Shown: positions 7,568 through 64,000 of the stretch, piece after piece
Position numbering within the stretch: the first letter of the stretch is position 1
How the letters are laid out: every line of letters starts with the position of its first letter
NCBI GenBank assembly: GCA_965603825.1
Contig: CBFDEM010000059.1
Location: 1 to 64,000 of the forward strand
Direction: 5' to 3'
Source: Blepharisma stoltei ATCC 30299
Lineage: Eukaryota > Protista > Ciliophora
Length of the DNA: 64,000 nt
Notes under the pieces: generated by a model
What the model saw: the letters and a program-made list of their open reading frames with translations, nothing else
Database searches by the model: none
What the model was told of the DNA's origin: nothing
Program-made: the position numbers and the translations under genes

Positions 7568-10500
7568 ATGAACAAAAACAAGAATTTTTCTGAAATCAGA
7601 TTTATAAAGATACTATCTTTTTTAGCAATGCTCAGATTTTTGTTCTTCATTTGAAATTATTATTGCTCAAAATGATAGGAATGAGCTCAATCAAGTTTGG
7701 ATTGAAGACATAAAAAAACAGTTTGAGCCAGTCATCGAATGGTATCAATGCGATTATTCTTTAATTTCAGAGTGTGTTAACTCACATCCAAATGCCATAA
7801 TCGTTCTTGATTTATCAGAAAAGTTTGAAGACACAACTAAGCCTTTCTCAATTATGCAAAGAAAATAATAAAATTCATTTGGTTCCTCAGAAAACTCATG
7901 AATCCCTTTATTACGACGAATGGACATATAGCATCTTTCCATCAAAGTTAGCCCAAACCGATGCATATTTTGCAGTTTTAGCTTACTTTAATTGAGACTC
8001 ATGGACTTGTAATCACTGATGGAGATCATGCATACATCAAGCAGAAATTTCTAGACTATTCAGAGACTTTTGACTATATAACTATAGAATCATCGGCAAG
8101 CCTTGAAAAGGTAGTAAACAGAGTTATCAAGCCTTTAGGAGCAACATTGTATTACATTTTTGCAAATTCTGTTCTCTCATCAAAAATTCAGGAGACATTG
8201 AAATCCAGAAAGCTCCTTTCAAGGGGAGATGGGATATTGCTAACCCAAGATAGCTGCTATGGCTGCAAAACCAATGGAGCAATCATTGTGGCTGCATGCA
8301 GGGCAAGAATATGCTAGCTCTCAAGAGCAATTTTTAATTAGCTCTTTTGAAAATTTAATTCTGTATTTATTGAATCACACAGCAGAAACAACAGAAGAAC
8401 TAAAGACATTTGCTGGAGATATACAGTGAGAAAAATCAATTCTCTATTGTAAATATTCAGGACAATCAAAGGCAAATAGTTGGATCAGTCTCTGCTGGAT
8501 CAGTAGCAATCTCGAAAACCTTGATTTTCCCTGGAAATACTACTGATGTGCCCAAGTCAGATAAAAAGATTTTGCATATGACAGTTTCTGGAGGCTCTTA
8601 CAACCCTGGAACTCGCTTCTTTGAGCCGCTCCTCTTTTATATTATGGCGCTTATACAGCATGAAGTTTAATTAATGAAGGTGTGCTTGGAATTTTAACAC
8701 ATTTTCAAATAAATTATTTTATTTTTGATTGCGGCGTGATTACTTATGATAAAGAATATGCAACAGCCTGCTTTACCAAAGATATAGATAAATTTGGACT
8801 TGCACACATATCAGCGACCTAGCTCTTTAATGACTATTGCAGAAATAAATCTTTTTAAAAGCTTAAATTTAACAATCCCAGTTGTTGGGTCAATCCTGAT
8901 GATTATTCATTGAATTCTACGTCGCTTTATCCTTTGTTTACAAGGGTAATTATTTCAAACCGCTATCTTTATTCGCTGACTTCGCTTTTATTTAGAGCTT
9001 TAGGATGAAGGAAAATCTGTGTTTTATATTCAGATGATGTAACTGGGAAATCAGGATATTCAGCACTTATAAGCAATGCAGAACAATATAACATAGAAAT
9101 TCTAAATTCTGAAAACTCAAGGGCTATCCCTGCAGACTCTAAATAGAACTAATATAAAAAATTACTCTGGATCATTGCAGAAAATCGTTGATACAGATGC
9201 AAGGCTTCTAGTTTTATTTTTTTTGCCACCTCTAATATATTATGTAATCGAAGAGCTTTATGATATGGGCTTAAGAAAAGGAGATCTCTTTATTTTTGTT
9301 ACAAACCAAGAAATACTTACAATGATCCAATACGATTTTATATAGAGTATAAAATTAAAGAAACTGGAGTTCCAATGATGGCTGTTAGTGGGCGAAATTG
9401 AGTAGGTAAGGTTGGGGAATTTGCTTACTCACAGATATCATCTAGATATAATGGAGTCCCTATTTGCCTCAACTTGCTCGAGCTATGATGCGGCATATTT
9501 AATAGGGATAGCTTTAGACTACATGATAAACCAAGGATTTGATTATACTGATCCTTACCAAATAAATTCAGCAATTAGAGCTCAAAAGTTTACTGGGTGC
9601 ACAGGAGTAGTTTCTATCGACAAAAGCAGCAATGACAGAGTTATGGACATTTTTGATATAATGGCCAGCAAAATAGATACAAATTCTGGAAATGTGAACA
9701 GCATACAAAATGGGTGAATTTCGCCCATTTGGTAGTACAATGCTGAGTATTAGAACACCTCTCATTTATGGAGATGGAACTACTGTAAAGCCAGATGACC
9801 TTAGAAACCAAAATAATAAATGCCCTTTCTCCTGATAAGCTTAGTAAGAACATTTGCTAAAGGAAGAATTCTCGTTTTTTCTATCTGCTTTTTGTTTGCT
9901 TTAGTGTCTTTCGCTAGCAACAGCATATATATGAAAAAACTGATGAAATATAACCATTGAAGAACTTAAAGTAAAGCAAGAAATTTCTCTGCAAGATATT
10001 ATTGTTGAGATAACCATAGGTATTGAATTTTTCCAATTTGCGGCCATGGGACCAGATATAGCCCCAATAAATAGCATCCTAGCAAAAATTAGCAGCTCTC
10101 TTTCTCTCAATCTGGAAAATATTTTTGCACTCCAGAAAGGGATATTTTGAATTCTAATAGATGGAGTCTTTGGGGCTATTTTATTTTGGCTCGTTTTATG
10201 CTTAGTTGTTCTACTCAGTTTAGATGAAAGATTTCCCAGAGTGACAATTTTCAGATTTTTAGCTTGGCTTGCAGACTATTTAATGCCTATTTTAGGCAAT
10301 TTGTGCTTTATCCCCTTTGTTTCGATGTGCTTGAATGTATTTATGTGCGACCATTCTATTGGAGATGGCTTTACTGACAGTTTTCTTGCTGCTGACTGTT
10401 ATTATTTTTGCTGGAAAGACGAGCACCTAATATATGCCATTTTTTCTTTTATTGCCCTCTTATGCTATGAACCACTGGCTGTTCTGTGCAGGCCTTTGTG

Positions 10501-11036
10501 GCAAGAATTGCAGCACATGGTGCATATACATACAGCTCCTCCGTTTTTAATGGTAAAAACTGTGTTTCAAGTCATATTTATAGTCATGAATAAAACAGTC
10601 AAAAGGGCTGATCAGCACTATCCATGGAGCCCTTTTTGCTGTTCTAATGGTCGCGTACATTGGATTTATATTTAGGTATAAGCCCTATAATTATCCAAGA
10701 CTGTGCTGGTGGCAAGCTTTGAGCTTAATTGGTGTGGTTTGGCTTTCTGTAATCTCGACAATCTCGTCAAATTTTGAAGGAAACGCGTATATTTATTTTT
10801 CCATAGTGTGCGTGGGATGAATTATAATTGCTCTTATCGGAATTTATGTGCAAGGAAGAAAGTATCCCAGTCTTCTGTATAGAAAAAAAGGCTTGGATAC
10901 AACTCATTTATTCAAGTTCGCATTTACTTTTGGTAAGCACTCCAAGAATGCTCTTGCAAAAATTGTCCCAGATCGTCGTCCATCATCTGTAGATTTAATG
11001 CCGAAAGACTTTTCAATTGCAAAGGAAGTTGATTAA
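7568..11036 (+). CDS. Receptor-like protein copy A (tandem Venus-flytrap/ANF-receptor-like domains + ~9 TM), with many 1-bp indels (pseudogene or read errors)
   Basis: Colinear with intact copy D from ATG 7568 to KEVD-TAA 11036, but scattered single-base insertions shift the frame. Confidence 0.75.
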
Positions 11037-11059
11037 TTTAAGTCTTTAGAAATTTAATA

Positions 11060-11669: not shown

Positions 11670-14600
11670 ATGAATCAAAAATCAGCAAAAAAAGAAGCAA
11701 GGCATTTCTGGCATAGGGTTTGTAAAGATATTATTTCTTTTATCTATGCTAAATTTAGTCTGTCTTCTAGCTGATATTCTTATTGTCCAAAGTGATAAAA
11801 ATAAAGGCAGCCAAAACTGAATTAATGAAGCAAGAAGACAATTTGAGGCGGTTGTTGACTGACACTATTGCAACTATACAGCAATTTCAGAGTGCCTCGA
11901 TATTTATCCTGATACTTTAATCGTTCTTGATTTATCAGACGATTTTGAAATACAACTGAGCCTTATCTCAACTTTGTGAAGAAAACAAGAAAATCCACTT
12001 GGTTCCTCAGAAAAAGTTATGAGTCTTTATTACTATGACGAATGGACGTATACCATCGTCTCTTCTCATTCAGCTCAAATGAATGCATACTTTGCAGTTT
12101 TAGATTGCTTTAACTGGACTCAAGGACTTGTAATTTCTGACGAAGATAACATATACAGCAAAAAAGAATTTTTTAGAATATTCAGCAACTTTTAATTATT
12201 TAGCTGTAGAGTCATCAACAAACATTGAAAGTTTAGTAAATCGGATTATCAAGCCTTTAGGCACTACTTTGTATTACATTTTTACAAATTCTGTTCTCTC
12301 GTCGACAATTCAAGAAGCTTTGAAATCTAAAAAACTTCTACTGGAAGGAGATGGATTAATTTTAAATCAAAACAGTGGTTACGATTGTATAATCGATGGA
12401 GCAATTATAATCACTATAAAAGGCCAAGAATATGCAAACTCGGCAGAGGAATTTTTATTTAAATCAATTCAAAATTTATTGCAATATTTATTTAATAGCA
12501 CGACAGAGCCAGCGACAGTTGAAGAAGCAAGATATTTAATGATGGTATATGGCCAGGAAAGCCAATTTTCTATCATTAATGTTCAGGAGGGCAAAAGAGA
12601 AATCATCGGCTCAGTCTTTGATGGAGAAGTAATAATAGTAAAAAATTTAATTTTCCCTGGAAACACTCCTAATGTGCCAAAATCAGACCAAAAAATATTA
12701 CAAGTATCAATCTCTGGAGGCTCTACTAATCCTGGCACTGCTCCAATGACATCTCTACCCCTTTTTTGCAACGGGGCATATACAGCATGGAGCTTGATAA
12801 ATGACGGCACATTAGGGATTTTAAAAAATTTTCAAATTAAATACTTCATTTCTGACTGCGGCACATTGAATTATGATGAAAAGTTTGCGAGACCTTGCTT
12901 TACCAAAGATATAGATAAAATTGGATTAGCGCATATATCAATGGGTACTGTAATAGCAACTGGAGAAATGAAGCTCTTTGAGAGCTTAAATGTAACAATT
13001 CCAGTCGTTGGGGCAGCAGCAGTAGGCCGTGCACTGAGCTCAACCGCACTTTATCCTATGTTCACAAGAATCGTCGTTCCGAACGACTACATACTTGCTT
13101 TGAGTTCGCTTTTCTTAAAAGTTCTCGGCTGAAGTAAACTCTGTGTCTTATATTCTGATGACTTATCAAGCAAGGCAACATATTCCACACTTATAGAAAC
13201 TTACACGAAATATGGCTTAGAAGTTTTAAACCCTGAAAGCTTAAGTGAGATCCCTGATAATCTAAATAGAACCACTATCAAGAATTATGCTAGCTCATTT
13301 CAAGCAATCTTAGATACACAAGCAAGGCTTTTGATTTTAATATGTATGCCTCCTGAATTATATTACATTCTTGAAGAGCTGTATGATTTAGGCCTAAGAA
13401 AAGGCGATCTCGTAGTTTTTGTTAAAAATTCAGTACTTCTTACAATGACAGAATACGATTTTATGTATACTTATAAATTTAAAGAAACAGGAGTTCCGAT
13501 GATCTCTATTTCTGGACAAAACTGGGTTGGAGAAGTTGGAAACTTTGCGTACTCAAAAATAGCATCTCTTTATAATGCAGTCCCTTATTCATATGCTTGC
13601 AATTACTATGATGCAGCTTATTATATAGCACTTGAATTGGATTCTATGATAAATCATGGGTTTGATTATTATGATCCTTATCAGCTAAATTTGACAATGA
13701 GAGCTCGGAAATTTATCGGATGCACAGGAAAGTTTTCGATTGATAAAGACAGCAATGACAGGATTTTGGAAAATTTTGATATTAGTGTTAATAAAATAGA
13801 TGCAGCTTCTGGAAATGTGACTGCTTATAAATTAGGAGAATTTCACCCATATAGCAGCATAATGCTAACTATTGATTCACCAATTATTTATGGAGATGGG
13901 TCCTCTATAAAGCCGGATGATCTAAGAAATCAAGATAATGAATGCCCTTTTTCTAATAAGCTAGTAAGGACGTTTACAAAAGGAAGAATTCTCACTTTTG
14001 GCATTTGCTTCGGATTTGCTTTAGTCTCTTTTATTTCTACCGCATATATATGAAAAACGTGGTGAAATATCGAAATAGAAGAGCTTAAAGAAAGGCAAGA
14101 AATTTCGTTGCAAAATTTTATTGTTCAGATAACAATAGGTATTGAATTTTTCCAGTTTGTAGCGATGGGGCCAGACATAACTCCAATCAGTACTTCTTAG
14201 CAAAAATCAGCAATTCTTTTTCCCTCAACATAGAAAACTTTTATAAGCTTAAAAATGGAGTATTTTGAATTGTAATTGATGGGATTTTTGGAGCTATTAT
14301 TTTATGATTAATTTTGTGTGCAACTATTCTGCTCAGATTAGACGAAAAATTTCCTAGAGTGTCATTTTTCAGAATTTTAGCTTGACTTGCTGACTATTTA
14401 ATGCCGATTTTAGGTAATTTATGCTTTATTCCATTTATTTCGATGTGTTTGTGTGCGATCAATCTATTGGAGAGATTGCTATTACTTTTGCTGGAAAGGT
14501 GATCATTTAATATATGCGATTTTTTCTTTTATAGCTCTTTTATGCTATGAGCCTCTTGCAATATTTTGTAGGCCTTTGTGGCAAGAATTGCAGCATACTC

Positions 14601-15113
14601 TACACATACACACGTCTCCTTTATTTTTAATGGTAAAAATAAAGGTCCAAATCATACTTATAGTCATGAATAAAACAGTCAAAAGAGCTGAAAGTACAGT
14701 ACGCGAAGCTTTATTTGGTGTTGTAATGGCTTCCTACATTGGATTTATATTTAGATGGAAGCCTTATAATTATCCAAGATTTTGTTGATGGCAAGCATTA
14801 AGCTTAATAGGTGTATTATGACTTTCTGTGCTTTCAACAATCTCATCTAACGTTGAAGGAGGCTATTTAATTTAATTTATTTTCTGTTTCTCTGTGTAGG
14901 ATGAGTTTTAATTGGTGCTATCGGTATCTATGTACAAAGAAAAAAATATCCAAGTCTGCTGTATAGAAAAAAGGTCTGGATACAAATCATCTATTTAGAT
15001 TCGCATTTACATTTGGTAAGCACTCGAAAAATGCCCTTTCAAAAATCGCCCCTCGTCGTACTTCTGAAGAACTTTCGTGCAAAGATTTTTCTATTTTGAA
15101 GCAAGATTATTAA
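11670..15113 (+). pseudogene. Receptor-like protein, divergent B subtype, with frameshifts and small deletions
   Basis: ATG 11670 to KQDY-TAA 15113, colinear with D but more divergent. Frameshifts near 11960-12180, 14200 and 14870-14980; deletions at about 14445-14475. Confidence 0.75.
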
Positions 15114-15354
15114 ATAATAAAATTTATTAGAATTTAGCTTTAAGTTCTTGATTTATGTGAAAGCTATCATAACTAGTGTTATAAAGAGCATGTTTTGAAT
15201 AGCTCAATATGCTTTTGCCACGAGGAATCATGCCTATCTACTTAGCATTCATAGAGAAATTTCCTGCTCTGTTTAGCTTAAATCATCGCAAAGATCCCCA
15301 AATGCCAAGCCGGTCCAGGAGTGGAAGGCTTGGTATTATCACCATTTTATTTGT

Positions 15355-16180
15355 GTGAGATTTGCTAAGATGTTATATTTGTTATCTATGCTAAATTTGT
15401 CTTTCTTTGTTGATATTCTTATTGTCAAAAGTGATAAAAATAAAGGCAGCCAAAACTGGAAAAGAGCAATTTGAGTCAGATATAGATTGGAAATATTGCG
15501 ATTAAACAGAAATTTCAGAGTCCTCAGTATTTATCTTGATACTTTAATCGTCCTTGATTTATCAGACAATTTTGAAATACAACTGAGTCTATCTCGATAA
15601 TGTGAAGAAAACAAAAAAGTCCACTTGGTTCTTCAAAAAAGGTATGAGTTTTATTGCTATGACGAATGGAATTATAGCATCATCCCTTCTGATTCAGCTC
15701 AAATAAATACATACTTTGCAGTTTTAGACCATTTCAACTGGACTCAAGGATTGTAATTACTGACGAAGACTGAATATACAGTAAAAAAGAATTTTAGAAT
15801 TTTCAGCAACTTTTGATTATTTAGCTATAGAGTCATCGACAAACATTTAAAGTTAATTAATCGAATTATCAAGCCTTTAGGTACTTCAATGTATTACATT
15901 TTGCAAATATTATTATTTTGTCAGAAATTCAAGACACTTTTGAAATCCCAAAAGCTGTTGCTGGCTGGAGAAAGTTTAATCAAAACAGCGGCTTTGGATG
16001 CAATATTGATAATTACTATAGAAGGCCATGGATATACTAGCTCACAAGAGGGATTTTTGTTTAGCTCAACTGAAAATTTATTGCAATATTTATTCAATAG
16101 CACGACTGAGCCTGCAACTGTTGGAGAAATAAGATAATTAATGAAGAAGACATATAATAAAAAAAATCAATTTTCTATAA
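15355..16180 (+). pseudogene. Degenerate 5' fragment of a B-subtype receptor gene (C)
   Basis: Matches about 11720-12570 (e.g. gataaaaataaaggcagccaaaac, aatagcacgac) with many stops. Confidence 0.8.
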
Positions 16181-16239
16181 TAAAAATTAGATTTTTTATT
16201 CATTTACAAAAATCTGAAAGTTTAATAACATTTTTATAC

Positions 16240-16760: not shown

Positions 16761-16767
16761 TAAAAAA

Positions 16768-19700
16768 ATGAACAAAAAGGCTAATTTTTCTGATATCGGA
16801 CTTATAAAAATACTATCTTTTTTAAAAATGCTCAATTTGTGTTTTTCATTCGAAATTATTATTGCTCAAAATGATAGGAATGAGCTAAATAAAATTTGGA
16901 TTGAAGAAATAAAATATCAATTTGAATCAGTCATCGAATGGCATCAATGCGATTATTCTTTAATTTCAGAGTGTGTAAACTCGCATCCAAATGCCATAAT
17001 AATTCTTGATTTATCGAACAGCTTTCAAAAGCAACTGAGCCTTTCTGAATTATGCAAAGAAAATAATAAAATTCATTTGGTTCCTCAGAAAAATCAAGAA
17101 TTTCTTTACGACGAATGGACATATAGTATCGTTTCATCAAACTTAGCCCAAACAGATGCATATTTTGCAGTTTTAGCTTACTTTAATTGAACTCATGGAC
17201 TTGCAATCACTGATGGAGATCATGCATACATCAAGCAGAAATTTCTAGACTATTCACAAACTTTTGATTATATAATTATAGAATCTTCGGCAAGCCTTGA
17301 AAAGGTAGTAAACAGAGTTATCAAGCCTTTAGGAGCAACATTGTATTACATTTTTGCAAATTCTGTCCTCTCGTCAAATATTCAGGAGACGTTGAAATCC
17401 AAAAAACTCCTTTCGAGAGGAGATGGGATATTGCTAACCCAAAATAGCTGCTATGACTGCAAAATCAATGGAGCAATCATTGTAACTGTTGCAGGACAAG
17501 AACATGCTAGCTCTCAAGAACAACTTTTGATTAGTTCTTTAGAAAATTTAATTCTGTATTTATTAAATCAAACAGTAGAAACAACAGAAGAACTAAAAGA
17601 TTTGCTGAAGATATATAGTCAGAAAAAACAATTTTCTATTGTAAATATTCAAGACAATCAAAGAAAAATAGTTGGATCAGTTTCTGCTGGATCAGTAACA
17701 ATCTTGAAAGCCTTGATTTTCCCTGGGAATACAACTGATGTGCCCAAGTCAGATAAAAAGATTTTGCATATGACAGTTTCTGGAGGCTCTTACAACCCTG
17801 GAGCTCCTCCTCTTACAGTAGCTCCTTTTTTATATTATGGCGCTTATACAGCATGAAGTTTAATTAATGAAGGTGCACTTGGAATTTTAGCACATTTTCA
17901 AATAAATTATTTTATTTTTGATTGTGGCGCGGTTACTTATGATAAAGAATTGACACCAGCTTGCTTTGCCAAAGATATAGATAAATTTGGACTTGCACAC
18001 ATACCAGCGCCTAGCTCTTTAACGACTATTGCAGAAATTGATTTTTTTAAAAGCTTTAATTTAACCATCCCAGTTGTTGGCTCAGAATCTGATGATTATT
18101 CATTGAATTCTACATCACTTTATCCTCTGTTTACAAGGGTGATTGTTTCAAACCGCTATCTTTTATCGCTGAGTTTGCTTTTATTTAGAGCTTTAGGATG
18201 AAGAAAAATTTGTGTTTTATATTCAGATGATATATCTGGGAAATCAGAATATTTAGCACTTATAAGTACTACAGAGCAATATAACATAGAAATTCTAAAT
18301 TCTGAAAACTCAAGGGCGATCCCTGCAGATCTAAATAGAACTAGTATAAAAAATTACTCTGGAACATTGAAGAAAATCGTTGATACAGATGCAAGACTCC
18401 TAGTTTTATTTTTTATGCCACCTCCATTATATTATATCATCGAAGAGCTCTATGATATGGGCTTAAGAAAAGGAGATCTCCTTATTTTTGTTACAAAGGA
18501 AGGAGTATTTCCAACGAGACTATACGATGATGTTGATAAATTAAAGATTCAGGAAATTGGAGTTCCAATGATATCTATTAGTGGACGAAATTGAGTAGGT
18601 AAGGTTGGGGAATTTGCTTATTCGCAGATATCATCTAGATATAATGGTCACTCATTTCCCACCACTTGCTCTAGTTATGATGCGGCATATTTAATAGGGA
18701 TAGCTTTGGACTACATGATAAACCAAGGATATGATTATACTGATCCTTACCAATTAAATTTAACAATCAGAGCTCAAAAGTTTACTGGGTGCACAGGAGT
18801 AGTTTTCATTGACAAAGGTAGCAATGACAGAGTTATGGATGCTTTTGATATAATGGCCTGCAAAATAGATACAAATTCTGGAAGTGTAATAACATACAAA
18901 ATGGGAGAATTTCGTCCATTTGGCAGCACAATGTTGAGTATCAAAACTCCTCTAATTTATGGAGACGGGACTACTGTAAAGCCAGATGATCTTAGAAACC
19001 AAATTAATAAATGCCCTTTTCATGACAATCTAATAAGGACATTTGCTAAAGGAAGAATTATCGTTTTTTCTATATGCTTTATGTTTGCTTTAGTGTCTTT
19101 CGCTGTCACAGCTTACATATGAAAAAACTGATGAAATATAACCATTGAAGAGCTTAAAGTAAAGCAAGAAATTTCACTGCAAGATATTATTGTCATGATA
19201 ACTATAGGTATTGAATTTTTCCAATTTGCGGCTATGGGACCAGATATAACCCCAATAAATAGCATCCTAGCAAAAATTAGTAGCTCTCTTTCTTTCAGTC
19301 TGGAAAATATCTTTGCTCTCCAGAAAGGGATATTTTGAATTCTAATAGATGGAGTCTTTGGGGCTATTTTATTTTGGCTAGTTTTATGCTTAGTTGTTCT
19401 ACTCAGTTTAGATGAAAAATATCCCAAAGTGACTATTTTCAGATTTTTAGCTTGGCTTGCAGACTATTTAATGCCTATCTTAGGCAATTTGTGCTTTATA
19501 CCCTTTGTTTCAATGTGCTTGAATGTATTTATATGCGACCATTCTATTGGAGATAACTTTACTGACAGTTTTCTTGCTGCAGACTGTTATTATTTTTGCT
19601 GAAAAGACGAGCACTTAATATATGCAATTTTTTCTTTTATTGCCCTCTTATGCTATGAGCCACTAGCTGTTCTGTGCAGGCCTTTGTGGCAAGAGTTACA

Positions 19701-20220
19701 GCACATGGTGCATATACATACAGCTCCTCCGTTTTTAATGGTAAAGACTGTGGTTCAAATCATATTAATAGTTATGAATAAAACAGTTAAAAGGGCTGAT
19801 AGCACTATCCATGGAGCCCTTTTTGCTGTTCTAATGGTCGCGTACATTTTATTTATATTTAGATATAAGCCCTATAATTATCCAAGACTATGCTGGTGGC
19901 AAACTTTGAGCTTAATTGGTGTGGTTTGGCTTTCTGTGATCTCAACAATCTCATCAAAGGTTGAAGGAAACGCGAATGTTTATTTTCCTGTAGTGTGCGT
20001 GGGATGAATAATAATTGCTCTTGTCGGAATTTATGTGCAAAGAAGAAAATATCCCAGTCTTCTGTATAGAAAAAACTTGGATACAACTCATTTATTCAAG
20101 TTCGCATTTACTTTTGGTAAGCACTCCAAGAATGCTCTTGCAAAAATTGTCCCAGATCGTCGTCCATCATCTGTAAATTTAATGCCGAAGGACTTTTCAA
20201 TTGGAAAGGAAGTTGATTAA
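16768..20220 (+). CDS. Intact receptor-like protein copy D, 1150 aa: signal peptide, two periplasmic-binding type-1 (Venus flytrap-like) domains, ~9 TM segments, short tail
   Basis: Seven supplied ORFs (16768-20035) lie in one frame joined by TGA=Trp. VFT hallmarks: LNSTSLYPLFTRV, ALGWRKICVLYSDD, YDAAY, FTGCTGVVFID. The C-terminal third is hydrophobic. Confidence 0.9.
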
Positions 20221-20355
20221 TTTAAGACTTTAGAAATAATATATTAGAGTATTGCTTATTTAATCTATTTTTAATCTATTTTTAATTTATTTCTATTTAT
20301 TTTTAATTCTTAGAATGCAATGGCTTCAAAAAATCAGCTATTTAATAATTATTAT

Positions 20356-20740
20356 ATGATGAAGAAGAAATTCTTCAAGCCAAGGTGTATGAATGAGGTT
20401 GGGTATGCATGCAAATTCTCTTTTCCTAAGGCTTTATTGTGCGGAGAGCATATTTAGGAGCATGCAAACTTGCCTAGTAGAGCTCATAATCTTGAATCAA
20501 TTTTTATGCAGGACAAAAGATGCAATTCTTGAATTCATTACAAAAGAAAACACAAAATGTAGCGAGTTGAGAAGAAATATTATAGATCCTTTAGCCAGCG
20601 TCTTCCTAATCAAAGAAAGATTTAGGAGATTTCAAAAGAAAGTTGGATTGCTACCCAGATGAAATAAGTGATTTCTTTGCAAAATTTCGCAAGCTTCAAA
20701 ATTATTAAAGTCAGAACAAGATCCTATTTTAGGATTATTG
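20356..20740 (+). pseudogene. 5' remnant of a Zn-module/coiled-coil (Kelch family) gene
   Basis: Reads RCMNEVGYACK...LLCGEHI*EH...GTKDAILEFI, aligning with KCLRQVAFVCK...TCEHHLKQH...GTKEAICNYI of the 56817 gene. Contains an internal TAG and a frameshift. Confidence 0.7.
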
Positions 20741-21322
20741 AGTTTATCTCAACTAAATAGAGAAAACAAAAAAATCCGCCTGATTCCTTAGAAAAAGTAT
20801 GAGTTTTATTACTATGACGAATGGACTTATATCATCATCATCCCTTCTTATTTAGCTCAAATGAATGCATACTTTACAGTTTTAGATTATTTCAACTTGA
20901 CTCAATGACTTCTAATTAATGACCAAGACGACATATACAGTAAATAACAATTTTTAGAATTTCAGCAACTTTGATTATTTAGCTGTAGAGTCATCGGCAA
21001 ATATTGAAAAATTAGTTAATCGAATTATCAAGCTTTTAGGTACTTCAATGTATTACATTTTGCATATCTATTATTTCATGAGAAATTCAAGAAAAAACTG
21101 TTACTGGCTGGAGATGGCTTAAATTTAAATCAAAACAGCAGCTAGGGATGCAATATTGATGGGGCTATTATTGTCACTATAAAGGCCAAGAATATTCAAG
21201 CTCGACAAAGGATTTTCTATTTAACTCAACTTAAATTTATTGCAATATTTATTTAATAGCAGCACGGAGCCAGCGACAGTTGAAGAAATAAAATACTTAA
21301 TGAAGAAAAATAACGAAAAAAA
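20740..21322 (+). pseudogene. Degenerate internal fragment of a B-subtype receptor gene (E)
   Basis: Matches about 11955-12560 (tactatgacgaatggac, gagccagcgacagttgaagaa) with stops. Confidence 0.8.
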
Positions 21323-21358
21323 GCAATACTCTAATATATTAAATTCTAAAGTCTTAAA

Positions 21359-24300
21359 TTAATCAACTTCCTTTGCATAAGAAAAGTCCTTTGGCATTAA
21401 ATCTACAGATGTGCGACGATCTGGGACAATTTTTGCAAGAGCATTCTTGGAGTGCTTACCAAAAGTAAATGCGAACTTGAATAAATGAGTTGTATCCAAG
21501 TTTTTTCTATACAGAAGACTGGGATATTTTCTTCTTTGCACATAAATTCCGACAAGAGCAATTATTATTCATCCCACGCACACTACAGGAAAATAAACAT
21601 ACGCGTTTCCTTCAACATTTGACGAGATTGTAGAGATCACAGAAAGCCAGACCACACCAATTAAGCTCAAAGCTTGCCACAAGCACAGTCTTGGATAATT
21701 ATAGGGCTTATACCTAAATATAAATCCAACGTACATAACCATTAGAACAGAAAAAAGGGCTCCATGGATAGTGCTATCTGCCCTTTTTACTGTTTTATTC
21801 ATAACTATAAATATGACTTGAACCATAGTTTTTACCATTAAAAACGGAGGAGCTGTATGTATATGCACCATGTGCTGTAACTCTTGCCACAAAGGTCTGC
21901 ACAGAACAGCTAGTGGCTCATAGCATAAGAGGGCAATAAAAGAAATATCGCATATACTAGGTGCTCGTCTTTTCAACAAAAATAATAGCAGTCGGCAGCA
22001 AGAAAACTGTCAGTAAAGTTATCTCCAATAGAATGGTCGCATATAAATACATTCAAACACATTGAAACAAAGGGTATAAAGCACAAATTGCCTAAGATAG
22101 GCATTAAATAGTCTGCAAGCCAAGCTAAAAATCTGAAAATAGTCACTTTGGGATATTTTTCATCTAAACTGAGTAGAACAACTAAACTTAAAACTAGCCA
22201 AAATAAAATAGCTCCAAAGACGCCATTTATTAGAATTCAAAATATCCCTTTCTGTAGAGCAAAAATATTTTCCAAACTAAGAGAAAGAGAGCTGCTAATT
22301 TTTGCAAGGAAACTATTTATTGGAGCTATATCTGGCCCCATAGCCGCAAATTGGAAAAATTCAATACCTATGGTTATCATAACAATAATATCTTGCAGCG
22401 ACATTTCTTGCTTTTCTTTCAGCTCTTCAATAGTTATATTTCATCATTTTTTTCATATATATGCTGTGGCAGCGAAAGACACTAAAGCAAACATAAAACA
22501 TATAGAAAAAACGATAATTCTTCCTTTAGCAAATCCCCTTATTAGATTTTCATGAAAAGGGCATTTATTATTTTGGTTTCTAAGGTCATCTGGCTTTACA
22601 GTAGTCCCGCCTCCATAAATGAAAGGAGTTTTGATGCTCAACATCGTGCCTCCAAATGGGCGAAATTCACCCATTTTGTATGCTACTATATTTCCAGAAT
22701 TTGTATCTATTTTGGTGGCCATTATATCAAAAGTGTCCATAGCTCTGTCATTGCTGCCTTTGTCGATAGAAACTACTCCTGTGCACCCAGTAAACTTTTG
22801 AGATCTGATTGCCGAATTTATTTTGTAAGGATCAGTATAATCATATCCTTGGTTTATCATGTAGTCCAAAGCTATCCCTATTAAATATGCTGCATCATAG
22901 CCAAAGCAAGTGTGGGCAAATATAATGCTATTATATCTAGATGCTATCTGTGAGTAAGCAAATTCCCCAACCTCGCCGACTCAACTTTTCCCAGAAATAG
23001 CCATCATTGGAACTCCAGTTTCCTTAATCTTTAATAAATCAATAGTATCGTCTGGTATTATTGGAAACATTTCTTGCTTTATAACAAAAATAACGACATC
23101 TCCTGTTCTTAAGCCCATATCATAAAGCTCTTCGATGACACAAGATAATAGAGGTGGCACAAGAAAGAAAACTAGAAGCCTTGCATCTGTATCAACGATT
23201 TCCTGCAATGTTCCAGAGTAATTTTTTATAGTAGTTCTATTTAAATCTTCAGGGATTACCCTAGAGTTTTCAGAATTTAGAATTTCTATGCTATATTGCT
23301 CTGCAGTGCTTATAATTGCTGAATATCCTGATCTCCCATTTAGATCATCTGAATATAAAACACAGATTTTCCTTCACCCTAAAGCTCTAAATAAAAGCGA
23401 AGCCAGCGAATAAAGATAGCGGTTTGAAATAATTACTCTTGTGAACATAGGATAAAGCGATGTAGAATTCAATGAATAATCATCAGGTATTGACCCAACA
23501 ACTGGGAAAGTTAAATTTAAGCTTTTAAAAATATTTATTTCTGCAATAGTCACTAAAGAGCTAGGCGCCGATATATGTGCAAGTCCAAATTTATCTATAT
23601 CTTTGGTAAAGCAAGCTGGTGTCAATTCTTTATCATAAGTAACCACGCCGCAGTCAAAAATAAAATAATTTATCCGAAAATGTGTTAAAATTCCAAGCAC
23701 ACCTTCATTAATTAAACTTCATGCTGTATAAGCGCCATAATAGAAAAGAGGAGCGAATGTAACAGGAGGAGCTCCAGGATTGTAAGAGCCTCCAGAAACT
23801 GTCATATGCAAAACCTTTTTATCTGGCTTGGGCACATCAGTAGTATTTCCAGGAAAAATCAAGGTTTTCGAAATTTTTACTGATCCAGCAGAAACTGTTC
23901 CAACTATTTGCCTTTGATTGTCTTGAATATTTACAATCGAGAATTTATTTTTCTGGCTATATATCTTCAGCAAATGCTTTAGCTCTTCTGTTGTTTCTGC
24001 TGTTTGATTCAATACATACAGAATTAAATTTTCAAAAGAACTAATTAAAAATTCTTCTTGAGAGCTAGCATATTCTTGTCCTGCAACAGTCACAATGATT
24101 GCTCCATTAGTTTTGCAGTCATAGCAGCTATTTTGGGTTAGCATTATCCCATCTCCTTTTGAAAGGAGTTTTTTGGATTTCAACGTCTCCTGAATTTTTG
24201 ATGAGAGAACAGAATTTGTAAAAATGTAATACAATGTTGCTCCTAAAGGCTTGATAATTCTGTTTACTACTTTTTCAAGGCTTGCCAATGATTCTATAGT

Positions 24301-24819
24301 TATATAATCAAAAGTTTCTGAATACTCTAGAAATTTCGGCTTGATGTATGCATGATCTCCATCAGTGATTACAAGTCCATGAGTTCAATTAAAATGAGCT
24401 AAAGTTGCAAAATACGCATCGGTTTGGGCTAAGTTTGATGGAAGGATGTCATATGTCCATTCGTCGTAAAGAGATTCTTGATTTTTCTGAGGAACCAAAT
24501 GAACTTTATTATTTTCTTTGCATAATTGAGAAAGGCTCAGTTGCGTTTCAAAACTGTTTGATAAATCAAGAACGATTATGGCATTAGGATGTGAGTTAAC
24601 ACACTCTGAAATTAAAGAATAATCGCACTGATACCACTCGACGACTGATTCAAACTGATATTTTGCTTCTTCAATCCAAACTTGATTGAGCTCATTCCTA
24701 TCATTTTTAGCAATAATAATTTCAACTGAAGAACATAAATTGAACATTGTTAAAAAAAATAGTTTCTTCATAAATCCGATATCAGAAAAATTTTTCGATA
24801 TTTTAGCCTTTTTGTTCAT
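21359..24819 (-). CDS. Receptor-like protein copy F, inverted relative to D, with one frameshift in a T-run near 21945
   Basis: ORFs from 24819 to 22869 share a frame; the 21979 and 21541 ORFs are shifted by one base. One T is missing in YAIFSF, possibly a sequencing error. Confidence 0.85.
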
Positions 24820-24829
24820 TTTTTAACTA

Positions 24830-37512: not shown

Positions 37513-37777
37513 TTTATTCTGTTATCTAGTTTATTTATTTATATAGATACTCAAAAACAAGATAAAAATTAATTACAGAAATAGGCTTAGAACTAAATTA
37601 AATAAGCTTAAAATAAAATTCATAAATAAATATCTGAAAATACCAATATATCTACTTACCAAGGATGTATTCATATTAAAATCATATTTCACAATTTTAT
37701 TGATTTTTCTTTAATTAAATATTTTATCACATTTTAGCCTTTTATGTTTTCCACAAAATATAATTAAATTATAGCTA

Positions 37778-50560: not shown

Positions 50561-50620
50561 AGTATTTTGATATTAAATAAGTACCTTAAAATCATATTTT
50601 ATAAAATTGAGCTTAAAATA

Positions 50621-53600: not shown

Positions 53601-53677
53601 TGCAAAAAAGATTAAGCAAAAGTGTATTCAAGACAGCATCTAAGCTTGCTGAAGCATTGTCGGAGCCTTACTTTTAA
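50621..53677 (+). CDS. EF-hand + WD40 repeat protein, WDR49/EFCAB8-like and probably ciliary (1018 aa)
   Basis: EF-hand DINKNGIVEWEEF followed by many WD repeats (SCSLDRKVILWD, SSGFDHDIYVWNPY); all ORFs in one frame. Confidence 0.88.
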
Positions 53678-56817: not shown

Positions 56818-56844
56818 TTTATTATATCTATAATATTTTAGTGT

Positions 56845-57165: not shown

Positions 57166-57207
57166 TCAATTTAATACTCTAATATATTAAATTTCTAAAG
57201 TCTTAAA

Positions 57208-60200
57208 TTAATCAACTTCCTTTGCAATTGAAAAATCCTTCGGCATTAAATCTACAGATGATGGACGACGATCCGGGACGATTTTTGCAAGAGCATTCTT
57301 GGAGTGCTTACCAAAAGTAAATGCGAACTTGAATAAATGAGTTGTATCTAAGCCTTTTTTCCGATACAGAAGGCTGGGATACTTTCTTCTTTGCACATAA
57401 ATTCCGACAAGAGCAATTATTATTCATCCTACACACACTACTGAAAAATAAATATACGCGTTTCCTTTAGTGTTTGATGAGATTGTCGAGATCACAGAAA
57501 GCCAGACCACACCAATTAAGCTCAAAGCTTGCCACCAGCACAGTCTTGGATAATTATAGGGCTTATATCTAAATATAAATCCAATGTACGCCACCATTAG
57601 AAGAGAAAAAAAGGTTCCATGGATAGTGCTATCAGCCCTTTTAACTGTTTTATTCATGACGATAAATATGACTTGAACCACAGTTTTTATCATTAAAAAT
57701 GGAGGAGCTGTATGTATATGTACCATGTGCTGCAATTCTTGCCACAAAGGTCTGCACAGAGTAGCCAGTGGTTCATAAAGCACAAGTCGCCTAAAATAGG
57801 CATTAAATAGTCTGCAAGCCAAGCTAAAAATCTGAAAGCTGTCACACTGGGGTATTTTTCATCTAATCTGAGTAGAACAACTAAGCATAAAACTAGCCAA
57901 AATAAAATAGCCCCAAAGACTCCATCTATTAGAATTCAAAATATCCCTTTCTGGAGAGCAAAGATATTTTCCAAGCTGAAAGAAAGAGAGCTACTAATTT
58001 TTGCTAGGATGCTATTTATTGGGGTTATATCTGGTCCCATGGCCGCAAACTGGAAAAATTCAATGCCTATGGTTATCTCAACAATAATATCTTGCAGCGA
58101 CATTTCTTGCTTTTCTTTAAGCTCTTCAATGGCTATATTTCATCATTTTTTTCATATATATGCTGTGACAGCTAAAGATACTAAAGCAAACATAAAGCAG
58201 ATAGAAAAAACGATAATTCTTCCTTTAGCAAATGCTCTTACCAACTTATCAGGGAAAGGGCATTTATTATTTTGGTTTCTTAGGTCATCTGGCTTTACTG
58301 TAGTTCCATCTCCATAAATGAGAGGTGTGCTAATACTCAACATTGTGCTGCCGAATGGGCGAAATTCTCCCACTTTGTATGTTGTCACATTTCCAGAATT
58401 TGTATCTATTTTGCAGGTCATTATATCAAAAGCATCCATAACTCTATCGTTGCTGCTTTTGTCAATAGAAACTATTCCTGTGCACCCGGTAAACTTTTGA
58501 GCTCTGATTGTTAAATTTAATTGGTAAGGATCAGAATAATCAAATCCTTGGTTTATCATGTAGTCCAAAGCTATCCCTATTAAATATGCTGCATCATAAC
58601 TAGAGCAAGTACTGGGAAGTGGAAAACCATTATATCTAGATAATATCTGCGAGTAAGCAAATTCCCCAACCTTACCTACTCAATTTCGCCCACTAATAGA
58701 TATCATTGGAACTCCAGTTTCCTTAATCTTTAATTCATCAGCATTATCATCGTATATTCTCGTTGGAAATATTGCTTCCTTTGCAACAAAAATAAGGAGA
58801 TCTCCTTTTCTTAAGCCCAAATCATAGAGCTCTTCGATGACATAATATAATGGAGGTGGCATAAAAAATAAAACTAGAAGTCTTGCATTTGTATCCATGG
58901 CTTTCTTCAATGTTCCAGAGTATTTTTTTATACTAGTTCTATTTAGATCTTCAGGTATCGCCCTTAAGTTTTCAGAATTTAAAATTTCTATTTCATATTG
59001 CTCTGCATTGCTTATAAGTGCTAAATATTCTGATTTCGAAGATACATCATCTGAATATAAAACACAGATTTTCCTTCATCCTAAAGCTCTAAATAAAAGC
59101 AAACTCAGCGATAAAAGATAGCGGTTTGATACAATTACTCTTGTAAACAGAGGATAAAGTGACGTAGAATTCAATGAATAATCATTAGAATCTGACCCAA
59201 CAACTGGGATGGTTAAATTAAAGTTTTTAAAAAAATTAATTTCTGCAATAGTCGTTAAAGAGCTAGGCGGTGATATGTGTGCAAGCCCAAATTTATCTAT
59301 ATCTTTGGCAAAGCAAGCTGGTGTCAATTCTTTATCATAAGTAACAGAACCGCAATCAAAAATAAAATAGTTTATTTGAAAATGTGCTAAAATTCCAAGT
59401 GCACCTTCATTAATTAAACTTCATGCTGTGTAAGCGCAATAATATAAAAGAGGAGCGACATATAGAGGAGGAGCTCCAGGGTTATAAGAGCCTCCAGAAA
59501 CTGTCGTGTGCAAAATCTTTTTATTTGATTTGGGCACGTCAGTAGTATTTCCAGGGAAAATCAAGGTTTTCGAGATTGTTACTGATCCAGCAGAGACTGA
59601 TCCAACTATTTGCCTTTGATTGTCTTGAATATTTACAATAGAAAATTGTTTTTTCTCACTATATATCTTCAGCAAAAGTTTTATTTCTTCAGTTGTTTCT
59701 GCTGTTTGATTCAATAAATACAGAATTAAATTTTCTAGAAAACTAATTAAAAGATTTTCTTGAGAGCTAGCATATTCTTGCCTTACAGCAGTCACAATAA
59801 TTGCTCCATTGTTTTTACAGTCATAGCAGCTATTTTGGGTTAGCAATATCCCATCTCCTTTTAAAAGGAGTTTTTTGGATTTCAATGTCTCCTGAATTTT
59901 TGATGAGAGAACAGAATTTGCAAAAATGTAATACAAAGTTGCTCCTAAAGGCTTGATAGCTCTTTTTACTGCCTTTTCAAGGCATGCTGACGATTCTATA
60001 GTTATATAATCAAAAGTTTGTGAATACTCTAGAAATTTCTGCTTGATGTATGCATGATCTTTATCAGTGATTACAAGTCCATGAGTTCAATTAAAGTAAG
60101 CTAAAGCCGCAAAATATGCATCGGTTTGGGCTGAGTTTGATGGAGAGATACTATATGTCCATTCGTCGTAAAGAGATTCTTGATTTTTCTGAGGAACCAA

Positions 60201-60521
60201 ATGAATTTTATTATTTTCTTTGCATAATTGAGAAAGGCTCAATTGTGTTTCAAAACTTTCTGATAAATCAAGAACGATAATGGCATTTGGATGTGAATTA
60301 ACTCAGTCTGAAATTAAAGAATAATCGCATTGATACCACTCGACAACTGACTCAAATTGATATTTTGTTTCTTCAAATCAAATTTGATTGAACCTGTTCA
60401 TATCATTTTGAGCAATAATAATTTCAAACGAAGAACACAAATTGAGCATTGCTAAAAAAGATAATATCTTTATAAATCCGATATCAGAAAAATACTTCGA
60501 TATTTTAGCCTTTTTGTTCAT
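57208..60521 (-). pseudogene. Receptor-like copy G with a 157-bp frameshifting deletion at 57775-57777
   Basis: Colinear with D except that D 19497-19653 is absent; the junction retains one TAT. Confidence 0.85.
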
Positions 60522-60589
60522 TTTTTTTAACTAAGCAAAAACGAAAATTCTGTTTTATTATTTTGATATAGCAACATAAACTCATTTAT

Positions 60590-63500
60590 AAGGCAAAAAA
60601 GTAACAAAATTCATTTCGTTCCTCAAAAAAAATACGACTCCACTTACTATGACGAATGAACATATGACATCATTCCATAAAACCTAGCTCAAGAAAATGC
60701 ATATTTTTCAATTTTAGCTTACTTTAATTGAACTCGTGGACTAGTAATCACTGATGAAGATAATGCATACATCAAGCAGAAATTTCTAGAGTATTCAGAG
60801 ACTTTTGACTTTATAACTATAGAATCATCGGCAACTCTTGAAAATTTGGTAAACAGAATTATCAAGCCTTTAGGTGCAGCTTTGTGTTACATTTTTGCAA
60901 ATTCTGTTCTCTCACTAAAAATTCAGGAAACGCTAAAATCCAAAAAGCTCCTATCAAGAGGAGATGGGATATTACTAAGTCAAAATAGCGGTTATAAAAG
61001 CAAAATTAATGGAGGGATTATTGTGACTGCTGCAGGACAAGAATATGCGATTTCCCAAGAACAATTTTTAATTAGCTCTTTTGAAAATTTAATACAATAT
61101 TTACTAAATCACACAGCAGAAACAGCAGAAGAGCTAAAGCATTTGTTAAAGATATATAACGAGAAAACTCAATTCTCTATTATAAATATTCAGGGCAATC
61201 AAAGACAAGTAGTTGGATCAGTTACTACTGGATCAGTAACTATCTTCAAAGATTTTATTTACCCTGGAAATGCTACTGATGTGCCAAGATCAGATAAAAA
61301 AATTTTGCACATGACAGTCTCTGCAGGCTCTACCAACCCTGGAACTCCTCCTATAACCGTTGCGCCTCTTGTATATTATGGCGCTTATACAGCATGAAGT
61401 TTAATTAACGAAGGCAAACTTGGAATTTTAAGACATTTCCAAATAAAGTATTTTATTTTTGATTGTGGTGTTATTACTTATGATGAAGAATTTGCAACAG
61501 CCTGCTTTAAAGATATAGATAAATTTGGATTAGCACATATACTGCGCCTACCTCCTTAATGACAATTGGAGAAATAGATCTCTTCAAAAGCTTAAATTTA
61601 ACTATCCCAGTCGTTGGATCTTCAGCTGATGACTATTCATTAAATTCTACATCACTGTTTCCTCTGTTTACTAGAGTAGTTATGTCAAACCGCTATATTT
61701 ACTCTCTGACTTCGCTATTACTTAAAGCTTTAGGCTGAAGGAAAATCTGTTTTTTATATTCTGATGATGTGTCTGGAAAGTCAGCATATTCAGCGCTTAT
61801 TGGCAATGCAGAGCAATATAACATAGAAATTCTAAATTCTGAAAATTCAAGAGTGGTTCCTGCAGATCTAAATAGAACTAACATAAAAAATTACTCTGAT
61901 TTATTGCAAACAATTATTGATACACAAGCAAGGCTTCTAGTTTTATTATTATTACCACCTGTATTATATTATGCAATTGAAGAACTTTATGATATGGGTT
62001 TAAGGAAAGGAGATCTCGTTATTTTAGTTCAAAGCCAAGAAATGATTACACTAATTCAATACGATTTTTTGTATGAATATAAGGTTAAGGAAACTGCGGT
62101 TCCAATGATGGCTGTTAGTGGGCGAAATTGAGTCGGCAAAGTGGGGGAATTTGCTTACACAGAGATAGTATCTCGATATAATGGTGTACCATTCGCCAAC
62201 ACTTGCTCTGGCTACGATGCAGCATATTTAATCGGGATTGCTTTGGAATACACTATAAACCAAGGATATGATTATAATGATCCTTACCAAATAAATTCGG
62301 CAATCAGAGTTCAAAAGTTTGCTGGGTGTACAGGAATAGTTTCTATTAATAAAAACAGCAATGATAGAGTTATGGATGCTTTTGACATCATGGTCGGCAA
62401 AATAGACAAAAACTCCGGAAGTATGATCTCGTACAAAATGGGTGAATTTCGCCCATTTGGCAGTACATTGCTGGCTATTAATGCACCTTTTATTTATGGA
62501 GATGGAAGTACTGTAAAGCCAGATGACCTTAGAAACCAAAATAATAAATGCCCTTTTCCTGATAAGTTGGTAAGGACATTTGCTAAAGGAAGAATTCTCA
62601 TTTTTTCTATATGCTTTATGTTTGCTTTAGTGTCTTTCATAGCAACAGCATTCATATGAAAAAATTGATGAAATATAACTATTAAAGAGCTTAAAGAAAA
62701 GCAAGAAATTTCACTACAAGATATTATTGTTGAGACAACCATAGGAATTGAATTTTTCCAATTTGCAGCTATGGGGCCAGATATAGCCCCAATAAATAGC
62801 TTCTTACTACGCCTTCCATTCGCGAACATGTATTTTTTGGATTAAAAGCAGTACAAAAACTAAATTTTATGTTGAAAAACTATATAAATGAATAAAAAAG
62901 ATTCAAATGAGAAATTATGCGCCGTTAATTAAAGTTTATTAGAGAGATTATAAATATTTATTTGTTTTAAAAAGCCTAATATTTGGTAAATTTTGAAGAA
63001 TTAATCTAATTTTTCTCAAAATGCGAAAATACGCTCTTCTTTTATGTGGCTATAATTTCTTTTTAAGCCTTTATGTCTTTATTTTCTTAGCAAAAATCAG
63101 TAATTCTCTTTCTTTCAATCTAGAAAATATGTTTGCTCTACAGAAAGGAATATTTTGAATCGTCATAGATGGAGTTTATGGAGCCATTATACTTTGGCTA
63201 ATTTTATGTTTAGTTATTCTGCTCAGCTTAGATGAAAAATATCCTAAAGTGACGGCTTTCAGGATTTTAGCTCGACTTGCAGACTATTTAATGCCTATTT
63301 TAGGAAATTTGTGCTTTATACCTTTTGTTTCAATTTGCTTAAATGTGTTTATATGCGATCATTCTATTGGAGATAGCTTTACTGAGAGTTTTCTTGCTGC
63401 CGACTGTTATTATTTTTGCTGGAAAGATGAGCACCTAATATATGCAATTCTTTCTTTTATTGCGCTCTTATGCTATGAGCCATTGGCTGTTCTGTGCAGA

Positions 63501-64000
63501 CCTTTGTGGCAAGAATTGCAGCACATGGTACATATACATACATCTCCTCCGTTTTTAATGGTAAAAACTGCCATTCAAGTTATATTTATAGTTATGAATA
63601 AAACAGTTAAAAGGGCAGATAGCACTATCCATGGAGCCATTTTTGCTGTTCTAATGGTTGCGTACATTGGATTTATATTTAGATATAAGCCCTATAATTA
63701 CCCAAGACTGTGCTGGTGACAAGCTTTGAGTTTAATTGGTGTGGTCTGGCTTTCTGTGATGTCGACAATCTCATCAAACACTAAAGGAAACGCGTATATT
63801 TATTTTCCAGTAGTGTGCATAGGATGAATCATAATTGCTCTTGTCGGAATTTATGTGCAAAGAAGAAAGTATCCCAGTCTTTTGTATAGAAAAAACTTAG
63901 ATACAACTCATTTATTCAAGTTCGCATTTACTTTTGGTAAGCACTCCAAGAATGCACTTGCAAAAATTGTCCCAGATCGTCGCACATCTGTAGATTTAAT
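60590..64000 (+). pseudogene. Receptor-like copy H: 5'-truncated, frameshifted near 61510-61550, carrying a 283-bp insertion, and running off the window end
   Basis: Similarity to D begins about 100 codons in (NKIHFVPQK) and continues to DRRTSVDL at the window edge. Confidence 0.85.
62807..63089. mobile_element. 283-bp AT-rich insertion bounded by TTCTTA direct repeats (retained IES-like sequence or small mobile insert)
   Basis: TTCTTA at 62801-62806 and 63084-63089. Removing the insert restores INSFLAKIS and the reading frame seen in the paralogs. No terminal inverted repeats and no GT-AG ends. Confidence 0.7.

Follow-up and report, generated by a model that had tools for sequence, protein, structure and literature searches.

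The window analysed in this study comprises bases 1-64000 of the 67,429-nucleotide (nt) somatic contig CBFDEM010000059.1 (NCBI; coordinates identical) of the heterotrich ciliate Blepharisma stoltei, and carries a subtelomeric array of genes for putative surface receptors, whose products join two tandem Venus flytrap domains (VFT1 and VFT2) to a predicted nine-helix membrane domain. The strain, ATCC 30299, is of mating type 1 and is the strain of the published macronuclear (MAC) genome (PMC9942806). A perfect array of the 8-mer CCCTAACA opens the window, and the same unit is described as the telomere repeat in the B. stoltei genome paper, together with UGA as a tryptophan codon and introns of 15-16 nt (PMC9942806). 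The subtelomeric position that an earlier note on this DNA had ascribed to the genes is thus borne out for this contig.

The copies of the gene family were located by tblastn with the protein of the intact copy D and by a scan of the six-frame translation under genetic code 4 with a family hidden Markov model (HMM). As a result, all six long copies named in the earlier note (A, B, D, F, G and H) were recovered, in two clusters at 7.5-24.8 kb (A, B, fragment C, D, fragment E and F) and at 57.2-64 kb (G and H, head to head) (Table 1). Three fragments had been claimed; C and E were found, and neither search returned a third one within the window. Nor did these searches find any family member between 25 and 57 kb, and positions 7568-64000 are therefore not one continuous stretch of receptors, as had been proposed: the intervening 32 kb hold unrelated genes, including those for a kinase, an EMP24 protein, two WD40-repeat proteins (37775-39235 and 50561-53674) and a Kelch protein.

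Long open reading frames (ORFs) become visible only when TGA is read as tryptophan (code 4); a reading under the bacterial code yielded fragments and was dropped. In copy D, 10 of the 19 tryptophan codons are TGA, and 8 of these 10 fall in alignment columns that hold tryptophan in 67-95% of the family, including the tryptophans of both FNW/LGW motifs described below, so the UGA=Trp code is confirmed from the data themselves. Copy D is the only long copy without lesions. Its ORF runs unbroken from its methionine through 1150 codons and needs no splicing, and the public record annotates the same continuous ORF, in agreement with the earlier note.

All five remaining long copies bear disabling lesions. 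Nucleotide identity is 86-89% among A, D, F and G, and H shares 83-85% with these. The deletion in G removes codons 914-965, which encode part of helix 4, the cysteine loop and part of helix 5. In copy H, about 86 codons are missing at the N-terminus. The rest is interrupted by two in-frame stops (codon 91, within a poorly aligned 5' end, and codon 127), a 1-nt deletion and a unique, AT-rich insertion of 283 nt (62801-63083) between helices 2 and 3. This insertion has no inverted or direct terminal repeats and no second copy within the window, and the annotated 338-amino-acid (aa) ORF of the H tail (P0001, 63021-63998) begins inside it. Copy B appears in the public record as a 553-aa ANF_receptor protein. 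The private single-base indels of copy A (14 insertions and 3 deletions) lie outside homopolymer runs and stand beside only 22 private single-base substitutions (12 nonsynonymous, 10 synonymous), with no in-frame stop in the frame of D. This ratio of indels to substitutions is far from that of ordinary pseudogene decay, and the indels may have either a technical cause, namely a consensus artefact in repetitive subtelomeric sequence, or a biological one.

The two divergent fragments, which carry VFT1 sequence only (36-38% aa identity to D), come after B and after D. They may be what is left of older family members that alternate with the young copies. Overall, the array in the window is young, subtelomeric and mostly decaying, with one intact gene, five damaged copies and two fragments. 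The term repertoire, used in the earlier note, overstates what the window holds, since only one copy is intact and the rest are decayed.

Table 1 Features of the B. stoltei window and residues of copy D aligned with GABA-B1 ligand contacts
Feature	Window position	Strand	D residues	Description
Telomere repeat (CCCTAACA)n	1..2427	.		Read directly; Blepharisma type
Copy A	7563..11033	+		Full length, 88.7% nt identity to D; 17 single-base indels
Copy B	11683..15104	+		Divergent, about 70% nt identity; several frameshifting indels; central ORF 12134-14197 intact
Fragment C	15343..16191	+	9-298	VFT1 piece only, about 38% aa identity to D
Copy D	16768..20220	+		Sole intact gene, 1150 codons + TAA; coding 16768-20217
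VFT1	16867..17757	+	37-333	Like NMDA-receptor amino-terminal domain
VFT2	17758..18993	+	334-745	ANF_receptor-type flytrap
Variable loop 1	17797..17832	+	347-358	PPLTVAPFL type; beta1-alpha1 loop; extrapolated GABA-B1 Trp65 position
Variable loop 2	18076..18099	+	440-447	GSESDD type; aligned with GABA-B1 Gly151, Ser152, Ser153
Variable segment	18403..18438	+	549-560	Includes GABA-B1 Tyr250 equivalent
Most variable segment	18472..18558	+	572-600	Lobe 2; begins at GABA-B1 Trp278 equivalent
Variable loop 4	18634..18672	+	626-638	HSFPTTCSS type; includes GABA-B1 Glu349 equivalent
Membrane domain	19045..20049	+	763-1097	Nine helices (predicted)
Conserved cytoplasmic tail (predicted)	20050..20217	+		About 55 residues; 9% variable sites among copies
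Fragment E	20666..21253	+	60-268	Divergent VFT1 piece, about 36% aa identity to D
Copy F	21362..24822	-		1-nt deletion at codon 957, beside T run; annotated 969-aa protein (P0215)
Copy G	57211..60530	-		157-nt frameshifting deletion; annotated 942 aa (P0225)
Copy H	60579..64000	+		Head to head with G; extends about 36 nt past window end
GABA-B1 Trp65			about 352	Loop 1; extrapolated four residues past aligned block
GABA-B1 Ser130			419	Outside variable loops; conservative Ser/Thr change
GABA-B1 Gly151, Ser152, Ser153			443-445	Loop 2 (GSESDD)
GABA-B1 His170			462	Outside variable loops; conservative Ile/Val change
GABA-B1 Tyr250			553	Variable segment 549-560
GABA-B1 Trp278			581	Start of most variable segment
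GABA-B1 Glu349			635	Loop 4

The ectodomain consists of two tandem flytraps of the periplasmic-binding protein (PBP) type-1 fold. Copy D was searched in TGA-free pieces, and work on whole domains was done with database proteins of the same family (P0215 for copy F, P0225 for copy G, P0001 for the tail of copy H, and the paralogue P0162). The N-terminal third of D has no Pfam match. A VFT1 profile built from 124 family sequences, however, matched the GluN1 amino-terminal domain among the sequences of the PDB (E 7e-15). The AlphaFold model of VFT1 from copy F, with a predicted local distance difference test (pLDDT) score of 92.6, shows alternating strands and helices, and Foldseek placed it with the same GluN1 domain (E 3e-15, TM-score about 0.6). 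For VFT2, two collinear pieces of D match PF01094 (ANF_receptor; E 3.5e-4 and 2.3e-3), and full-length paralogues match it at about residues 350-690 with E values of 1e-15 to 1e-56; the Pfam scan of these paralogues gave nothing besides ANF_receptor and the related Peripla_BP_6. Against the PDB, single pieces of D gave no sequence match and family profiles were needed: that of VFT2 (128 sequences) matched the amino-terminal domain of AtGLR3.4 (4e-30), GABA-B1 (5e-25) and the flytraps of T1R, mGluR and CaSR (about 1e-23), the E values spanning 4e-30 to 1e-21 overall. The two flytraps are also homologous to each other, as judged by hhalign (probability 97.9%), and the motif pair FNW...ITDGD and LGW...VLYSDD occurs once in each half of the ectodomain of D. 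The claim of two tandem PBP-like lobes marked by a repeated motif pair is thus supported by profile and profile-profile evidence and, for VFT1, by the fold.

The membrane domain, by comparison with these databases, is an orphan. A Kyte-Doolittle scan of D shows about nine hydrophobic segments, and the AlphaFold model of the membrane domain of P0162 (residues 745-1136, built with 129 sequences; 58% identical to D in the membrane region) contains nine long helices at a pLDDT of 88 and a predicted TM-score (pTM) of 0.85. The motifs L..DC...CW...H and KPYNY are present in D, as the earlier note had read them. A linker of about 20-40 residues with one invariant cysteine connects VFT2 to the membrane domain. 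Of the four cysteines that are invariant in the family, three sit in the loop that joins helix 4 to helix 5, and the fourth immediately precedes helix 1. If the ectodomain is outside, the model would put all four on the outer face, and the short KPYNYxR loop and the tail inside. Within the predicted helices, Asp67 is invariant and Gln80, Lys254 and Gln258 are nearly so (numbered by the first sequence of the membrane-domain alignment).

No Pfam family was found for this domain in pieces of D or in 49 membrane domains of the family (E up to 1), no PDB sequence matched a single D piece or, at E up to 10, the profile, and the best PDB fold found for the model by Foldseek had an E value of 0.44 and a TM-score of at most 0.23, with GPCR (G protein-coupled receptor) entries at E >1 and TM-score <0.2. 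An internal repeat was not detected either (hhalign probability 3.7%). The membrane piece of D matched 276 representative clusters; among the best 150 listed, the full-length proteins have about 1000-1240 aa with the match at the C-terminus, and shorter matches are truncated family members, so that no stand-alone or otherwise fused form of the domain was seen. The only significant fold match of the P0162 model is A0A5J6VI06 in BFVD (E 2.8e-4, probability 1.00; TM-score 0.52 by query length and 0.69 by target length), an uncharacterised 284-aa protein labelled 'Megaviridae environmental sample'. The likeness lies in the fold of the nine-helix domain and both structures are predicted, whereas the two proteins differ in sequence (14% identity) and the viral one, at its length, has no room for flytraps. 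This match hints that giant viruses may carry a flytrap-less version of the module.

Several known identities were considered for the membrane part and rejected. A class C seven-helix domain is contradicted by the nine helices, the lack of a GPCR fold and the lack of 7tm_3 (PF00003) in full-length paralogues (E up to 0.01) and in the 49 membrane domains (E up to 1), and the NCD3G cysteine-rich domain, a class C hallmark that is absent in GABA-B too, was not found in the Pfam scans. An ionotropic glutamate receptor would carry Lig_chan and a type-2 S1S2 domain, neither of which occurs in the full-length paralogues or the 49 membrane domains, and no channel fold was matched. A receptor guanylyl cyclase of the natriuretic peptide receptor kind does not fit nine helices, a short tail and the lack of a catalytic Pfam domain. 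Transporter identity was set aside because no transporter Pfam family recurs among the 49 members and fold matches are non-significant. Given that no relative was found by Pfam, PDB sequence or PDB fold, the domain is not a class C seven-helix domain, a glutamate-receptor pore or a cyclase receptor; the earlier description of about nine segments unlike those of class C receptors agrees with this.

To describe the variation among copies, D, F, G, A and H were compared. Seventy-six sites show at least three residue states, and these are concentrated in the lobe-2 module as had been noticed: 51 lie in VFT2, 17 in VFT1 and 8 in the membrane domain. Conservation is highest in the membrane region and the tail, where 21% and 9% of sites vary, respectively. 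The four sets of loop variants quoted in the earlier note are all exact. The ligand contacts of GABA-B1 were taken from PMC6429233 and carried to the numbering of D through a HMMER alignment of the VFT2 profile with GABA-B1, and the mapping is thus one of sequence homology only. Most contact equivalents fall in or at the edge of the variable loops; those of Ser130 and His170 lie outside and vary conservatively (Table 1). All nine contact-homologous positions vary among the five copies, compared with 36% of the other VFT2 sites (Fisher p 1.2e-4), and the enrichment holds within ±1 to ±4 residues of the contacts. Moreover, the contact columns have higher entropy than the rest of VFT2 across the family (Mann-Whitney p 0.004-0.005), and they are more variable both in 56 B. 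stoltei-type paralogues, nearly all of them full length (Mann-Whitney p 0.005), and in 72 other members (p 0.03). Such contact sites are normally the most conserved ones where a receptor keeps a single ligand. This homology suggests that the variable sites lie at the cleft of VFT2.

The copies are mosaics made by gene conversion. The nearest neighbour of a copy switches along the gene: D goes with G through most of VFT2 and is nearly identical to F at codons 887-912, while A goes with H at codons 587-612. Within residues 572-600, three old cassettes can be told apart, shared by D and G, carried by F, and shared by A and H. This pattern is consistent with a homogenised framework in which the pocket segments stay distinct, and also with patchy conversion from more distant paralogues. 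Since the copies are recombinant, codon site models on a single tree (M1a/M2a) were not used, and pairwise and windowed counts were made instead.

Pairwise ratios of nonsynonymous to synonymous change (dN/dS, Nei-Gojobori) are 0.25-0.40 overall, 0.14-0.27 in the membrane domain, 0.31-0.42 in VFT1 and 0.22-0.64 in VFT2. In the neighbourhoods of the contacts, the ratio of nonsynonymous to synonymous differences per site (pN/pS) rises to 0.8-1.1, against about 0.4 in the rest of VFT2, and the contact sites show an excess of nonsynonymous-variable over synonymous-only-variable sites (odds ratio about 2.3, p 0.02-0.06). The ratio is therefore not uniformly well below 1, as would have refuted the claim of the earlier note, but amounts to about 0.2 in the membrane helices, about 0.4 in the framework and about 1 in the pocket. 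In residues 572-600, four cross-group pairs have 17-27 nonsynonymous and 0.5-2.3 synonymous differences, a ratio of 3-9 (nominal p 0.02-0.07), and ratios in this range occur in five cross-cassette pairs; because this segment was chosen after looking, its values above 1 are suggestive only. These counts suggest that positive or diversifying selection may have acted at the pocket. The family had been called diversifying in the earlier note: the part of that claim which concerns non-uniform, pocket-homologous variation stands, whereas a dN/dS above 1 is only suggestive, being post hoc, of p 0.02-0.07 and drawn from mosaic copies.

Taken together, the genes of the array probably encode members of a large family of multi-pass (type I) surface receptors, in which the ectodomain would act as the ligand sensor, VFT2 would set specificity and the nine-helix domain would provide a shared output. 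The predicted order of parts is a signal peptide, VFT1, VFT2, the short cysteine-containing linker, the nine-helix domain and a tail of about 55 residues. A small ligand would be caught in the cleft of VFT2, its specificity set by the variable pocket loops, and VFT1 may serve assembly or modulation. Closure of VFT2 would be relayed through the linker and the cysteine-rich extracellular loop to the nine-helix bundle, and the invariant bundle and conserved tail would drive one common output in all paralogues. The array itself is undergoing homogenisation and reshuffling by gene conversion while mostly decaying. Some points weigh against this interpretation and the role it gives to the pocket. 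The placement of the variable sites at the cleft depends on homology to GABA-B1; a dN/dS of about 1 in the pocket could reflect relaxed constraint just as well as diversification; ratios above 1 were obtained in a segment picked post hoc; and most of the compared copies are damaged.

A special case of the receptor interpretation would make the proteins ligand-gated channels on the logic of ionotropic glutamate receptors, with one flytrap like an amino-terminal domain and one ligand-binding flytrap set over a pore, so that the ligand would shift the membrane potential. Such a channel would suit the electrically controlled swimming of ciliates, and the best matches of the two flytraps, NMDA-receptor amino-terminal domains by sequence and fold for VFT1 and the plant channel GLR3.4 for VFT2, as well as the conserved charged and polar residues inside the predicted helices, point the same way. 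The Pfam scans of full-length paralogues and 49 membrane domains, however, revealed no pore loop, just as they revealed no Lig_chan or S1S2, and the best channel-like entry in Foldseek was a viral 'TRP' protein (E 0.3, TM-score 0.28), and we regard a channel as unlikely.

The loop differences might also be functionless, that is, neutral drift of unconstrained surface loops, mixed by gene conversion, in decaying pseudogenes or in a VFT2 that in this clade no longer binds a ligand. Damage in five of six long copies, a pocket ratio at the neutral value of about 1 and the 'decayed remnants' of which the genome paper speaks (PMC9942806) would be expected from such decay. Nevertheless, dN/dS is 0.25-0.40 overall and about 0.2 in the membrane domain even between damaged copies, so most of the divergence arose under constraint. 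In addition, D is intact, the contact columns are unusually variable in the 56 B. stoltei-type paralogues and 72 other members as well, and residues 572-600 carry far more nonsynonymous than synonymous differences in four pairs, all of which make a purely neutral origin distinctly unlikely.

Nutrient transporters or transceptors, in which a flytrap that binds the substrate would be joined to a permease, much as bacterial binding proteins are tethered to their transporters, are very unlikely: flytraps of this clan do serve uptake systems, some members are listed in IMG as 'ABC-type branched-chain amino acid transport substrate-binding protein' and the top, non-significant Foldseek entries are LeuT/APC-fold amino-acid transporters, but these reach only E 0.4-1 and TM-score <=0.23, the internal repeat typical of secondary transporters is missing (hhalign, as above), no transporter Pfam recurs among the 49 members, and a set of over 200 paralogues whose pockets vary while the membrane part is invariant fits sensing better than uptake.

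Under the receptor interpretation, the family offers a concrete and very large set of candidates for small-molecule sensing in Blepharisma and Stentor. Roles in sensing pheromones, prey or predators are speculation. To our knowledge, no receptor for a Blepharisma gamone has been described. Gamone 2 is a tryptophan derivative (PMC9942806). A bolder view, which we put forward tentatively and hold to be possible at best, is that the nine-helix domain is a structurally new flytrap-coupled transducer and that heterotrichs use this family, with its more than 200 genes, as their main repertoire of small-molecule chemoreceptors, selection having diversified the pocket loops and gene conversion having shuffled them; the gamone 2 receptor could then be among its members. 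The young array may serve as a natural experiment, in which a homogenised framework with distinct pocket segments points to the residues likely to set specificity. The practical value will be modest before a ligand or an output is demonstrated.

Other features of the contig were also recorded. Directly after the telomere repeat, two long code-4 ORFs of 626 and 977 codons occupy 2716-7475, and the second contains a reverse-transcriptase domain (RVT_1, E 1e-12 and 7e-10 on two pieces); the pair looks like a non-LTR (non-long terminal repeat) retroelement at a chromosome end. An older public record of the same contig is 83,625 nt long and has segments of 131-378 nt that are absent from the window, at 2177-2554, 2853-3069, 4777-4991, 7441-7571 and 10356-10553 in the L001 numbering, which correspond to window positions of about 56160, 56455, 58157, 60603 and 63374. 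Three of the five are bounded by TA and three have terminal inverted repeats; one lies within copy G and one within copy H. Based on these bounds and repeats, the older record was taken as a version including germline-limited sequences, and its extra segments look like such sequences (internal eliminated sequences, IESs). At the far end of the contig, outside the window and about 3.4 kb past copy H (L001 about 14200-14610), the place of the telomere repeat is taken by a long array of the 8-mer ACTTTATA.

The genes of the window belong to a genome-wide family that has already been reported and is hence not newly seen. The SI Appendix of the genome paper describes two homologous B. stoltei orthogroups, OG0000085 (81 proteins) and OG0000014 (143 proteins), 224 proteins in all, whose members carry an ANF_receptor domain in the middle and 7-9 helices at the C-terminus. 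According to the same source, the genes form clusters that often lie at contig ends and include eroding pseudogenes, and among ciliates only Stentor has relatives of them (PMC9942806). Copy D and its neighbours resemble these orthogroups in length (1150 aa, against about 1100-1200 aa in the family), in the central PF01094 match, in the nine C-terminal helices and in forming clusters with damaged copies. Over its full length, D shares 41-46% identity with annotated B. stoltei members, so the clade in the window represents a separate, recent local amplification. At least 60 B. stoltei paralogues exceed 1100 aa, and they lie on many large contigs. All named matches of the family come from B. stoltei or Stentor coeruleus, the environmental matches carrying no taxon, and the family is so far known from heterotrich ciliates only. 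In the literature, we found no molecularly defined ciliate chemoreceptor of this kind, and the family is described in a single paragraph of that supplement (PMC9942806).

Among better-known systems, the natriuretic-peptide/guanylyl cyclase receptors have an ANF_receptor ectodomain in common with the B. stoltei proteins, but these are multi-pass, end in a tail of about 55 residues and have no kinase-homology or cyclase domain. The ionotropic glutamate receptors and plant GLR channels provide the best matches of the flytraps, the GluN1 amino-terminal domain for VFT1 by sequence and fold and that of GLR3.4 for VFT2 by sequence, and differ in their type-2 S1S2 domain and Lig_chan pore, both of which are lacking here. 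With the class C GPCRs (GABA-B1, mGluR, CaSR and T1R), the family shares the flytrap Pfam family, a variable pocket over a conserved transducer and multigene expansion. The V2R and OlfC chemoreceptor repertoires follow the same class C logic. Unlike class C receptors, the B. stoltei proteins have two tandem flytraps and nine helices, and no NCD3G or 7tm_3. The published supplement gives domain and transmembrane counts only (PMC9942806); to these the present analysis adds a second flytrap, the orphan status of the membrane domain, the mapping of the pocket together with its statistics, and the mosaic nature of the copies. Tandem flytraps set on an orphan nine-helix bundle would thus add a third wiring of a flytrap to the membrane, beside the GPCR, channel and single-pass enzyme solutions.

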